Part shown: positions 5,723 to 59,100 of the stretch, in pieces
Position numbering within the stretch: the first letter of the stretch is position 1
Layout: every line of letters starts with the position of its first letter
Origin: Octopus bimaculoides
Taxonomy: Eukaryota
Reading direction: 5' to 3'
NCBI RefSeq assembly: GCF_001194135.2
Contig: NC_068987.1
Span: 96,472,715-96,536,714 of the forward strand
Length of the DNA stretch: 64,000 nucleotides
The notes under the pieces: generated by a model
The model's database searches: none
The model's input: the letters and a program-made list of their open reading frames with translations, nothing else
Told to the model about the DNA's origin: nothing
Translations under genes and position numbers: made by a program

Positions 5723-8700
5723 CTGAAAGACAGAACACAGTTTTTAAAGATTAGTTCAATACAGGTAACAATAGTTCAAGTACATGCAGAAGGCTGCAGT
5801 GAAATTTAAATTTGAACTGAAAAGGGCCAAGGCACTTTTACCAGGATTTGCTAAAACATATATCAATATTTTGGGCCTGTCAGTCTGAAGTAGCTCCTTC
5901 AACAACAATAATAGCAAAAGGCTGGTAATCTGGAAATGCCTTTCCTGCTGCTCAATTCAAATTTACAAACTATTGCTTTGTGTAGCAAAACACATGCATA
6001 CATTTCATACACAACATCTTGATCAATCTAGAAGACACATGCCTAAGGTGGAATACTTAGGGATTGAACCTAGAAAAGCATGGTAAGAAGAAAGACTTTT
6101 GATGATCAGTACTCTATTAGAACTTGAGAAGCAAACACAGACCAGTAAGATTTTTCTTCAGTGATACAAGATGGGTGTGCAACGAAATGAAGCACGTGGT
6201 ACTGAATTGATGTTTTTTTCCTCTCCCCTTTTTTCCTTTTCTTTATCTTTCTTTTGTAAAAACTTATATTATGGAAGAATTTAATAAATGATAACAGCTC
6301 ACCAGATTTTAAGTCACTTGCTTTGCACACTTAACAAAAATCCTAAGCAAGAGGACCTGCAATGATTACATCATTATTGTTTTAATGTCCATTTTTCATG
6401 TTTGTACGAGTCAGGCAGATTCTTTGGAAAGGTGGCTGTTTTCCTGTTGGCAACCCTCAGCTGTTTCCAAGTAAGGAAATATTTCCCCATGGCTAGACAT
6501 GACTTTACAGAAGATTGGAAATGACAGGCACTGCTTACATGATGGTGACACATGTTTACAACTATTACATGGAGTCAAAGCAAGGAGATATCCATCCATC
6601 CATCTATCCACACACACACACACACACACACACACACACAAACAGATTTAATAAGTAACTAATCCATGAAACTCTCAGCAATTGAGTCACTCTGTTGCTT
6701 GTACTAAATATTAATTAAAAAAAATAACATATATCATCATCATTTAATATCTACTCTCCATGCTGATGATGGGCTTCTTACAGCTTCTGTCTACCAAATA
6801 TAGTCACAAGGCTTTGATTGGTCCAGGGCTGTAGTAGGAGATACTACCCCGACGTGCTCTGCAATGAGACTGAACCCAAAACCATGTAGTTGTAGTTGGG
6901 AAGGAAATTTCTTACCACACAGCCACAACTACAATGACTTTGTACTGTATGAAACCTACAAAGAAACATTTGTATGACCTCATCATCTCAGATTGACTAG
7001 TATTGTCTATACACACACAAATTATTATACCGTACATCAACTTCAAGGGTCTTTGTCACAACTTCATAGCAAAAATAATAAAACGATAGAGACATTAAAA
7101 TATGGAAGCTACTTGTACAGACTAGTAGTGCGATCAGACATCATTATCAATAACAACAGAAACAAAAATATAATGAAACATTTGCTTTCTTACAGATGTT
7201 ACAAAATTTGGTTGAGGAAAATATCTCCTTGAAAGAAATTCTAATTTTAGAAACGTTTTAAGATTTAGAAATAGAAATAGGAATATTAAAAAAAAAAATC
7301 AAAACAAAAAACACAGTACCAATGATAGTGTATTAGGGATGGATAAAAACCAAGTATGGAAAAAAAAACCCACCAAAAAATTGCTCCAGTGATATAATAT
7401 ATAACTTATCCTATGTCCAGAGGATAGAGTTTGGAAACATGAATAGTTCAAATGAAAATAAATGTACAGAAGCTAATCAATATAAAAAATATGACTACAA
7501 ACATTGATTTGTATCTACTTTTTGGAGACAAAACTCCCTGATGTTTCTACATTAAAGAAGACCGAAACATTTTTTTGAGATTAAGAACCATTAAGTAAAT
7601 TCTGTAAAATAATAATAATAATAAAAATACTTGAACCTTAAATGAACAAATGAAGTTGCAGCAATGATTTAACATTTGGTTTTCCATGCTTGAATGGGTC
7701 AGATGAGTATGTTAGAGCAGTTTTCTATGGCCAGATGCAATTCTTGTCACCAACTCCCACCCACTTGTTTCTAGGAGAGCTAATAATAAGTCTGTTCCTA
7801 GAGAAATAAGGTCACTTCCTGTTGAAAAAGAGTTCATAACTCCAACTAATAAGATTTGTCTCCCCTTACACACACTTCCTGTTTTGACACCACACTTCCT
7901 GCTTAACACAAACTTTTAGCCCCTTTTCTCTTTTTTTTAAACCCAACACAACTCTCAATTCTCATGCATCCTTATTTTTCCAACCATTATATACATGAAT
8001 TACCATTGAACTTCAAAAGCTCAAAGACAATATAATGTATTGGTATATTTATTTTTTTATATATTATTTTCTTCATTTTGTACTTCTTTGTAAAAAACAT
8101 TTTCATTCTCCCTCTTCTTGATAATCTGCTATGCAATGAAAGCCGGTTAGAAATCTTTATTAAAATATGCTTCCAGTTTAGCATTCTGCCTTATTATTAT
8201 TTTTCATTTTCCTATTATTTCTCCACGTGTGGTTAACACAACCCCACTATTGACTGACTTATATATATATATAAATATATATATATATATATATATATAT
8301 ATATGATTTTTCCTTTCCACAAACTACAGGACACAAGTGAGGTTGGAAGAAAGATAAAAGGAGAACGGTTTATTNNNNNNNNNNTATATATATATATATA
8401 TATATATATATATATATATATATATATATGATTTTTCCTTTCCACAAACTACAGGACACAAGTGAGGTTGGAAGAAAGATAAAAGGAGAACGGTTTATTA
8501 AAATGTTCAAGCCTGTTCTGAATGGAAAGAACAACAATAATATAACAACCAGTTAATGATCTGGATTAAAAAAACATCTTTAAAATATGAGTAAATCATA
8601 AAACGAGCTCCGTCATGGAACGAATTGAACTCTTACTGCAAGGTATCACCTGTATATATATACAAATATAATGTGTGTATGTATATATGTGTGAATGTAT

Positions 8701-9814
8701 GTATTATGGTAGGATTCAATCACAAAACAGTTACTAAAATTAAATTACAGAACTCTGTAGAGTTTTAGAAATCAAACTTTTCCCTTATCAAATGCATAAT
8801 TTCCAGTTGGGGTGCAAACGTGAACATTTTTCCATTAATTTCAAATCAAAAATATCAATTTGATATGGAAAGCCTTTTTTAAAAAGCAAAAATTCTTAAA
8901 AACAGACTTTTTAACCTTTATTAATTTTGTTAATTTTTCAGTGGTGTGTGATTAGTCATTATTTATGTATGTTTGCGGTTGGCACTGTTCAAATTTGACA
9001 CTCAATAATATTTTGATTTGCATATTATATGCTTTTTGTAGAATGGGTTTAAAAAATGCTAGTAGCTCATAGAGAGAGAACTTCAGTAAAAATTGTCTTC
9101 TTAATAATAACTTTGCAATTGTAAAGACCTACTTGATATTATGCCAAAAAACCAAAAAAAGGAGCTTTCAATACTTATAAAATTTGTTGTATTTGTTGTT
9201 ATTGCCTACATATTGTCTCTTTATAAATCTAAAATATTCTACTTCTTTGACAATATTATTCAAATTATATGACAATTTAAACTTCCACATTAAATCACTG
9301 ATCACTGAAAAAGGAATGAAAGTCATGATAAAATAATTAAATTCATTTTTTCTATGTTTTCTTTTTGCATCAAATTATACTGAATGTGCATACATTTTCT
9401 TTTTTTTAAAAACTATTAGTTTAACAATTTGACTGGGTGTTTTGTTGTTTTAGTAACTGGACTGAAGTTTTTAACTAATTGCAATCTTATTATATAAGAT
9501 TATGTATATAAAATCAAATATATTAAATTGTTAGATGAATTTGGTTTTTTTCTAATTGGCACTCCATTGTTATATGTCTGAAAATAGGCAAAATTTATTC
9601 AAATTTCAAAAATGATGAGCAAAAGTTGTAGAAGAGAGCTGCTACAAAAAAAAAAAAAGAAAAAAAAAAACTCCCCATTAAACACTACAATGAAAATACT
9701 TTACATGTTTATTCAAATAACATTGGAAGAAATTAAAATAAATGAGAGAAAACATGAATTTATCCAACAACCCAATATATATATATATATTAATCCTTTC
9801 CAATCGTGAAGTAT

Positions 9815-9985
9815 ATTTGCTACCTAAATGTGGTGGATCCATAGGGGATGATGCTACTGTTGTTTATAGCTCCAGGAAAACATCTCCTCCAGCTGGATAG
9901 CGACACACTGTCTGTCCGATTAGTATTTGCAAAGGGAAATCATCATTCCCATCTCTAGCCTTACGTGATATACACGGACCCGTTA
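9815..9985 (+). repeat. Diverged third copy of the same family
   Basis: ggatgatgctactgttgttt..ccaggaaaacatct..ccagctgg...cattcccatctctagcct. Confidence 0.65.
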
Positions 9986-57020: not shown

Positions 57021-58519
57021 AAACATGCAAAAAAAAAATGAGACAGTCACAGCTGAAATGTTCCCATACATAGATCACCTCAATCAGGGCTTAACAACAA
57101 CCATAGGCCACTCACCAGGTTGTGTTATTTCTCTCATTTTTTGTTTCTTCTACTAACAAAATCTATTGCACTTCATTTCTATCTCTCTTTTTCTCTCTAT
57201 CTCTTTATCACAAATATCATGATACGATACCACCTTCAACTAAAACCTTCCATTGTGTATCACTTGTCATATCTTCTACTAAACAAGTTTACCGATCCTT
57301 CTTTCACATTAAGTGTACAAAAAAAAAAGCCTAAGATGGACACAAAAATTATGGTAATAATGATGGCAGCAACATTAACGATGATTATAAGAAAGACCTA
57401 AACATAAACAGTCACATATACATATGTGTGCAGACATGCACTCTGAGAGCTATACATACACACACACACACACACACACATTTATGAACAGATTATACAT
57501 ACTCGTGCACACAGACATAAGTAGAGAGAATTATACATTCATGAAACGCATACAAATATGTTCACAGCCAGACTTCTACACATGTACACTGTATGCACAC
57601 ACAAACAGACATACACATTACTCTAAATTAGAACAGACTTGGCCTGTGACACCTAGTCTAAGCCATGCTAGTATGGAAAATAATGGAGATGTATGTGTGG
57701 AATATACATATGAATCTATAAAAGAAATGTTTCAATTTTGGACATTTTTAATATATCTGTATGAAAATTAAATCTAAGAAGAATATAAAAAAGTGAATAG
57801 TTCACTGCTTGTCAAAATGTCTTTGATTCATTTTCACAATACATAACAGATCAATTAAAGCAACATTTTTAATTCAAACTTTACCACCTTCTCTGAAATA
57901 GCAACATTTACTTCTAAAATTCTGGCAGATGATAGATTAATCAAGAAACATGCACATTTTAGAATATTAAATATTAATTATTTGAAACCGAAGTTGAATC
58001 AACACAGCAAAGAATAAGAAATTGGTAACATCTTTCACAGTAAAGCAATGAATTAAATGTGTTAGAGTATTTAGTATTTCCTCTGTGTTTTGAGTTCAAA
58101 TCCCACTGCATATCAAGAAATAAGCACCAGTAATAGACTGGATTTTATGTTTTATACTTTCCCGTTTTTTTTTTTTAAATAAAAAAAAAGCGAATTATCT
58201 AGGACCGAAGCAGATACAAAACAAATATCGATGTAACTGTCAAAATAGGGAGCATTTGAGAAGATGAAGAAATCTCTTGATGAGTTAAAATTCAGTTTCA
58301 ATTCCAGACAAAACCCAAACTCCTTGAACTCTGCATATTTTTTTTTATTTGATTTTTACATCCTAAGAAAATTACTATAACATAAAAATAAAAAGTTTGT
58401 GGGTGGGAGAAATTATTCTATTTTGTCAGTTCTGGGGCAAAATGCAACAGTATAATTAAAATCAATAAATTACTGGTATCTTTTTAACCAGAAACAAAAG
58501 TAGGTTTTGAAGGAGAGGA

Positions 58520-58835
58520 AATATACTTGATTATCTGTACCACATTATGCTACTAGTACTTGAATTAGGCAATCAGACAACTACAACTGAGACACATTTT
58601 ACTGATAGTCTCCAGCTCCAGAGTTGAAAGGCAAAGATGACCACTACAGGATTTGAACTTAGTTCATAGAAGGATGAAACTAAATAGTAGTTTCAAATTT
58701 TAGCACAAGGCCAGTAATTTAACGGAAGGTGGTTTAGTTGATCACATCAACCTCAGTGCTCAGCTGGGACTTATTTTATCAATCCCAGCTGCTAAACCTA
58801 GTGTGCTAATGATTCTGCCAACTCACCACCTTAGA
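58520..58835 (-). mobile_element. SINE family A copies (one diverged, one internally deleted)
   Basis: Same consensus. Confidence 0.65.
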
Positions 58836-59100
58836 TGAATCTATTGTAAATCATTCAGTTAAGGACTGTACTATTTCTTTTAAATCTGTTAAGTCCTAAC
58901 ATTGACAGAAGTGAAACGTTATTATAAAACTTAAATTACATTTGCTTCAACCAACAAAATAAGTATTTGACATTGACAACAAGAAATAATGTTGACTTCC
59001 AATTGCAAGAATTCTGGAAAAAAAAAATGTCCTTTTTCTTTTGTACTCAGAGACATTAGTCATCAAGTTGCCAGCTATCAACAGTAAGTCCATGTCTTAC

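Follow-up and report, generated by a model that had tools for sequence, protein, structure and literature searches.

A GnRH/corazonin-type neuropeptide gene on the opposite strand within a RUFY1/2 intron of Octopus bimaculoides, and the occurrence of the same nest in other molluscs

In Octopus bimaculoides, a single intron of a RUFY1/2 gene contains, on the opposite strand and between two consecutive exons of the host, a complete gene for a neuropeptide of the gonadotropin-releasing hormone (GnRH)/corazonin (CRZ) type. The locus lies in a 64,000-nucleotide stretch of contig NC_068987.1 (assembly GCF_001194135.2, positions 96,472,715 to 96,536,714 of the forward strand)—here called the window, from whose first letter all octopus coordinates are counted. 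The host, transcribed from the minus strand, appears to be a single RUFY1/2-type endosomal adaptor gene; the GnRH gene (+) would comprise four exons, probably with a promoter of its own, in the intron between the host exons ending '...KLQ' and beginning 'xCxSxLKxK...'. We consider it likely that the two form a real and ancient host/nested pair of independent transcription units, kept together by lock-in of the small gene. The pair is older than the split between cephalopods, bivalves, and gastropods, and probably older than the split between molluscs and annelids.

The upstream host exon, at 59268..59101 (-), is 168 nt long, begins and ends in phase 0, and encodes a coiled-coil segment (DVERELELQ...EMYKKLQ) matched by 103 homologues; its identity with the oyster, Biomphalaria, and P0109 exons is 76-81%. 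It is bordered by ...cattgcag before GAT and by gtaaga after CAG. The next host exon, at 5722..5625 (-), is 98 nt long and starts in phase 0; it encodes TCDSNLKQKTEVVAKLEEKTEQLVNTLREME followed by two bases of a Lys/Asn codon (K), with ...tctttcag before its first codon ACT and gtgagt after its final AA. The original prediction had placed an exon ending ...MYKKLQ in phase 0 at the one position and a phase-0 exon at the other, and on re-reading both stand, with canonical splice sites. The two exons share a strand and follow the order expected for one gene. What lies between them, 5723..59100 (-), is a phase-0 intron that counts to the predicted 53,378 nt, including 2,439 N in ten gaps, SINE-like (short interspersed element) repeats, and a probable fragment of a long interspersed element (LINE). 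These two coiled-coil exons are the only RUFY exons detectable in the window; the RUN and FYVE exons of the octopus gene would lie outside it.

The original prediction had further stated, for human RUFY1/2, that the two exon-encoded segments are contiguous in the protein, and full-length homologues agree with it. An exhaustive phmmer search with the joined exons returned 588 relatives, the full-length ones covering query residues 1-88 in a single stretch of equal length, with E-values against full-length proteins down to 2.7e-26; the source names of the matches are 'RUN and FYVE domain-containing protein 1/2'. The nearest full-length relatives carry RUN (P0109, P0111) or RUN and FYVE (P0110), with no Pfam FYVE match in P0109. 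Two full-length RUN and FYVE proteins (P0110, P0118), as well as P0109, align over both exons with consecutive residue numbers and no insertion, and once joined, the exons from octopus, from oyster, and from an annelid-like contig described below align without gaps to a contiguous stretch of three full-length proteins. Uninterrupted passage across the junction (...KLQ-ECESSLKHKTE...) is also seen in two cDNA-like fragments, P0002 and P0008. When more than 120 RUFY proteins were compared with the window by tblastn, the two exons were found at consecutive protein coordinates (for P0109, 376-430 and then 429-461), and no other credible RUFY segment was found within the 64 kb; hidden RUFY exons inside the octopus intron were rejected on the same search. 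By homology, the host mRNA is predicted to splice the two flanking exons directly to each other, and the oyster annotation likewise joins them in one 655-aa product. The 88 residues of the joined exons, used in a word-indexed search, gave mostly single-exon open reading frames (ORFs) that read past KLQ into the intron, which shows that the intron position is widespread among animals.

The coding sequence of the nested gene (+) consists of 47592-47798 and 49209-49271, which join to encode a precursor of 89 aa. This precursor is identical at 88 of 89 residues (99%) to the cDNA-derived 'GnRH-related peptide' of O. vulgaris (oct-GnRH, Q8T8D2), the sole difference being Ile4/Thr, and shares 72% identity with the cuttlefish precursor. 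Exon 2, at 47557..47798 (+), follows the acceptor ctgctgtttatttcag at 47541-47556 and contains the end of the 5' untranslated region, the ATG at 47592, the signal peptide (47592-47684), the peptide, and the start of the associated peptide, ending in phase 0 with GAT before gtaagt. Read from the ATG, a 31-residue hydrophobic leader, MAFFIFSMLLLSLCLQTQA, precedes the mature dodecapeptide QNYHFSNGWHPG (47685-47720, +), which is followed by the Gly-Lys-Arg processing site (GKR, 47721-47729, +). The signal peptide, the Gln-initiated peptide with its HFSxGW core, and the Gly plus dibasic site are thus all present, in columns that are invariant in the precursor alignment. The peptide is that listed as Oct-GnRH, pQNYHFSNGWHPGa, in Table 1 of PMC5592718. 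Its production, its amidation, and the activation of a GnRH/CRZ-type receptor have been reported in the literature for O. vulgaris. Pfam has no dedicated model for such precursors, and the octopus precursor gave sub-threshold Pfam matches only; the related AKH model PF06377 scored 14.1 bits, below its cut-off of 22.9.

Exon 3, at 49209..49275 (+), follows the acceptor ttctttcag, encodes EEINRIITTCTGPVNEIADL, and closes with the TGA at 49269-49271 and AAAG before gtaaag; its end coincides with an exon boundary of the oyster and Aplysia genes. The octopus stop codon stands 4 nt before this conserved donor (49269-49276), so the last exon is probably non-coding in octopus, whereas in oyster and Aplysia it still encodes a C-terminal tail. 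Separately, the intron between the two coding exons holds a perfect 35-nt tandem repeat of 2.4 copies at 48925-49008.

The outer parts of the GnRH gene are modelled from sequence signals. A TATA-like box, TATTTAAA at 43308..43315 (+), stands upstream of a putative non-coding exon 1 at 43340..43397 (+), with an approximate start and with AG before the donor gtaaaa at 43398. At the other end, a putative 3' untranslated exon 4 would occupy 49913..50145 (+), with an acceptor ag at 49911-49912, AATAAA signals at 50061-50066 and 50122-50127, and an approximate end. In Aplysia, the GnRH mRNA contig placed on its genome has four exons, the non-coding exon 1 being 8.6 kb upstream of exon 2. Because this four-exon layout and the shared exon-3 boundary match the octopus model, we infer limits of about 43.3-50.1 kb for the transcription unit as a reasonable estimate. 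The original prediction had put the whole of that unit inside the intron: the coding exons are there, on the plus strand, and the putative untranslated exons (43.34-50.15 kb in all) would also fall within 5723-59100. CAC/CAT trinucleotide runs occur just 5' of the putative promoter, at 43020-43045 and 43128-43160.

The same nest is found in other animals of the Lophotrochozoa, the group covered by our survey. Its first sign came from 10-kb flanks fetched around homologues of the RUFY exon ending in KLQ (the KLQ exon) on long public contigs. Antisense exons in two of these encode ...QAYHFSKGWFPGKR... (L004) and ...QNYHFSNGWQPGKRSQEICQFRPDVKTLIFKLIE (L006, bivalve-like), and a profile search with the two sequences then reached named GnRH genes on annotated chromosomes. 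On chromosome CM130320.1 of the oyster Crassostrea virginica, in sequence without N (L008), the GnRH gene LOC111122224 lies at 10001-11782, opposite to an annotated 655-aa RUN and FYVE gene that extends from 2965 to beyond 21782. The RUFY exons bracketing it, 13557-13390 (...MYKKLQ) and 7334-7239 (ACEGSLKHKSELVNKLEEK...), have the splice positions and the phase 0 of the octopus exons; the oyster GnRH gene is in the orthologous RUFY intron, here 6,055 nt long.

An annelid-like contig from ENA (L011, which extends L004) repeats the arrangement, with a KLQ exon at 19543-19376, a SEGTVKHKTELVAKLEEK... exon at 7168-7076, and a GnRH exon between them on the opposite strand; its predicted peptide is one residue from the Capitella peptide pQAYHFSHGWFPa (PMC5592718). 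In Aplysia all four GnRH mRNA exons fall within a 661-aa RUN and FYVE gene on the opposite strand. In Biomphalaria the GnRH/CRZ gene is antisense and 9 kb downstream of the KLQ exon, and in L006 the GnRH exon is antisense and 5.7 kb downstream, with no RUFY exon in between in either. The same intron is therefore identified in octopus, C. virginica, and the annelid-like contig; Aplysia places the gene inside the host, and Biomphalaria and L006 are consistent with this. Four other 10-kb flank sets (L001, L002, L003, L005) showed no GnRH motif and no following RUFY exon, and are uninformative. The contig of L005 is equal in length to the one that carries the GnRH ORF P0236, and that of P0049 to the one of P0237, which hints that the two genes may share a contig there. 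A search of other genomes had been proposed as a means of dating the nest, and its presence in oyster, Aplysia, and the annelid-like contig is best read as ancient. A separate observation concerns the annotation of Biomphalaria glabrata (L012, 24384-29118), where the host model, RUN-only and 433 aa long, stops past the KLQ exon but short of the GnRH/CRZ gene; it may represent a short isoform of RUFY, or else the long intron (>28 kb) may have split the gene model.

These other loci also bear on whether the octopus nest could be an artefact, either of assembly, with a GnRH contig mis-slotted between RUFY exons, or of exons taken from two RUFY paralogues. The interval does contain ten runs of N, four of them (41758-42077, 45763-45924, 46670-46679, and 54615-55371) beyond the six on a program-made list, and four are uncheckable, including the one that parts the upstream RUFY exon from the GnRH gene. 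The same arrangement, however, occurs in gap-free sequence of C. virginica, Biomphalaria, and the ENA contig. Three of the octopus gaps, each of 10 N, are flanked flush by identical sequence—115 nt at 8375 (8260-8374 = 8385-8499), 33 nt at 12028 (11995-12027 = 12038-12070), and 33 nt at 46670 (46637-46669 = 46680-46712). Such flanks indicate uncollapsed contig overlaps, so that the sequence is continuous there and the true sequence slightly shorter than written. Three further gaps (17007, 21387, 26506) are flanked on either side by one and the same array, TA-rich or of 34-nt tandem units. As for two paralogues, the exons stand in the correct order on one strand, and a single RUN and FYVE gene, of 655 aa in oyster and 661 aa in Aplysia, hosts the nest elsewhere. 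Both forms of artefact, which the original prediction had named as what would undo it, are very unlikely.

No exon is touched by a gap, all gaps being intronic or intergenic, so the reading frame is unaffected; frame problems at gaps were considered and are ruled out on this ground. The GnRH coding sequence and the putative exon 4 lie within the gap-free block 46680-54614, and the gaps 45763-45924 and 46670-46679 fall between putative exon 1 and exon 2.

On the reading of an ancient nested pair, the arrangement would have survived as accumulating SINEs, LINEs, and microsatellites lengthened the intron from about 6 kb in oyster to about 53 kb in octopus. Some 22% of the window recurs elsewhere within it. 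SINE-like units, 150-600 nt long, occur in up to 17 copies and in both orientations (for example 134-358, 1498-1938, 23952-24167, 43633-43839, 47079-47300, and 61392-62013), several of them in GnRH intron 1, and microsatellites are frequent. An ORF of 169 aa at 37033-37542 (+) gave a sub-threshold match to the zinc-binding motif of reverse transcriptases (Pfam zf-RVT, 26.2 bits against a cut-off of 27.5) and is probably a LINE fragment in the RUFY intron. This repeat load explains the roughly nine-fold difference in intron length between octopus and oyster. None of the exons is covered by dispersed repeats, and scans of the window for Rfam families and tRNAs found none.

The most likely relation between the two genes is that of independent transcription units: RUFY pre-mRNA would be transcribed through a silent or active GnRH gene and the intron then spliced out. 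The most likely reason for their persistence together is that the small gene is locked in, because separating the pair needs two breaks in one intron or else destroys the host gene. The conservation could also reflect shared cis-regulation, with enhancers for GnRH neurons spread through the RUFY intron, or RUFY elements around GnRH, so that the locus is one regulatory block in which RUFY is bystander or host. Across no fewer than three mollusc classes and an annelid-like animal, the intron and orientation have been kept while intron size changed nine-fold; wherever its position can be measured, the GnRH gene sits nearer the upstream (KLQ) end of the intron; and the maintenance of microsynteny by regulatory entanglement is an established concept. 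Passive lock-in fits these data equally well, however, and the oyster intron, at 6 kb, could hardly accommodate a large regulatory landscape; conserved non-coding sequence was not identified, at a distance between species too great for such a search. We regard shared regulation as unlikely, though as the more plausible of the two functional explanations.

The other is that the antisense arrangement is itself functional. Convergent transcription might lead to mutual repression, to a shift in the RUFY 3' end or isoform in GnRH neurons, or to nuclear double-stranded RNA edited by ADAR. The orientation is indeed antisense at every locus found, and the RUN-only Biomphalaria model may point to a short isoform of RUFY that stops ahead of the nested gene, but it may equally be a split annotation. 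Of the animal gene pairs nested on opposite strands that have been studied, most are not known to interfere with each other in any clear way, and GnRH is expressed in few cells, to which any effect on RUFY would be confined. We consider this explanation improbable, and the consequences raised in the original prediction—transcriptional collision, isoform change, and double-stranded RNA with editing—are speculation. Both the regulatory and the antisense explanation are ranked below lock-in because nothing specific supports either of them.

Several points weigh against the preferred reading of an ancient pair held by lock-in. Selection on shared regulation or on antisense effects would yield the same pattern of conservation, and passive lock-in is argued from general knowledge of nested genes. 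The junction of 59101 to 5722 is drawn from homology, and the putative octopus exons 1 and 4 from sequence signals. Four gaps (38379, 41758, 45763, and 54615) give no signal of continuity from the sequence, and no gap other than the last of these, 757 N at 54615..55371, stands between the upstream RUFY exon and the GnRH gene. For the ENA contigs, taxa were assigned from the type of peptide only. Finally, in one further contig (L007, of 2x coverage) the orthologous intron, 7888-12526 (4.6 kb), contains no GnRH-, CRZ-, or AKH-like motif, so that not every animal has the nest.

Genes nested on the strand opposite to their host are common among animals; examples are OMG, EVI2A, and EVI2B within an intron of vertebrate NF1, and Pcp within Drosophila Gart. 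Like these, the octopus case has a small complete gene, with its own putative promoter, antisense in one intron of a larger and broadly used host, and conserved for a long time; it differs in that the nested gene encodes a neuropeptide, the host is RUFY1/2, and the nest is found in molluscs and a probable annelid. The mollusc classes compared here diverged in the Cambrian. The precursor resembles those of other lophotrochozoans, with no difference in the gene product: oct-GnRH, Cg-GnRH, ap-GnRH, and ly-GnRH/CRZ share a signal peptide, the pQNYHFSNGW... sequence, an amidation and dibasic site, and an associated peptide, and the precursor genes share a phase-0 intron after a '...K(I/L)(I/L)(D/E/Q)' motif. 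The rat GnRH1 locus also has transcription from the other strand, Adelman et al. having reportedly described an opposite-strand 'SH' transcript there in 1987. That is likewise a GnRH-family gene overlapped from the opposite strand; it differs in being an overlapping antisense transcript at another locus rather than a gene nested in RUFY, and homology is not implied.

Our literature searches, GnRH synteny studies included, found no published description of a GnRH or corazonin gene nested in RUFY; the arrangement is implicit in public annotations, and it is for this specific pair and its conservation that no description was found. We know of no vertebrate GnRH gene inside a RUFY intron. Genomic neighbourhood has been used to trace GnRH-family genes through the vertebrate GnRH paralogon and bilaterian GnRH/VT/NPS synteny (Roch et al. 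2014, PMC3969558), a study in which RUFY is unmentioned. Human RUFY1 is at 5q35.3 and RUFY2 at 10q21.3, and their chromosomes are those said to hold the 'ghost' sites of GnRH4 and GnRH3 (PMC3969558). This coincidence is only a lead. It would be in keeping with a rather doubtful proposal that we put forward tentatively, in which the intron after '...KLQ' is the ancestral bilaterian home of the GnRH/corazonin gene, and human RUFY1 and RUFY2 are hosts emptied by reciprocal loss after genome duplication.

If that proposal were true, the intron would serve as a positional anchor for very divergent GnRH/CRZ genes in other phyla, and could help to decide whether lophotrochozoan 'GnRH' is orthologous to corazonin or to vertebrate GnRH. 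Peptides of the GnRH family are short and fast-evolving, and it is still debated, mainly on receptor trees and weak synteny, whether the mollusc and annelid forms correspond to vertebrate GnRH or to insect corazonin. A host intron occupied by the gene since before the mollusc classes split is a precise marker independent of peptide sequence, and any chromosome-level genome can be examined for it—starfish and amphioxus (each with GnRH as well as CRZ), priapulids, arthropods, shark, lamprey, and teleosts, for gnrh3 beside RUFY2. The pair also offers a natural setting in which to ask whether convergent transcription across a neuron-specific gene is costly to animals that edit their RNA heavily, and it shows a small part of the octopus genome that kept an ancestral arrangement while the intron grew nine-fold.

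Two minor results concern annelid-like sequence. A scan of JGI metagenomes found 24 GnRH-type exons (L013-L036), nearly all encoding QAYHFSKGWMPGRKR behind diverse leaders, with QAYHFSNGWSPGRKR in L013; these contigs, of 1-6 kb and too short to reach RUFY exons, are probably annelid host DNA in symbiont metagenomes. In L004, at 10227-10466 (L011 19323-19084), the 3' part of the KLQ exon and its donor are repeated twice more in tandem just downstream. The extra RUFY-like matches past the KLQ exon were rejected as candidates for the next exon, being this local triplication of the exon's 3' part, and the tandem copies could act as duplicate splice donors.

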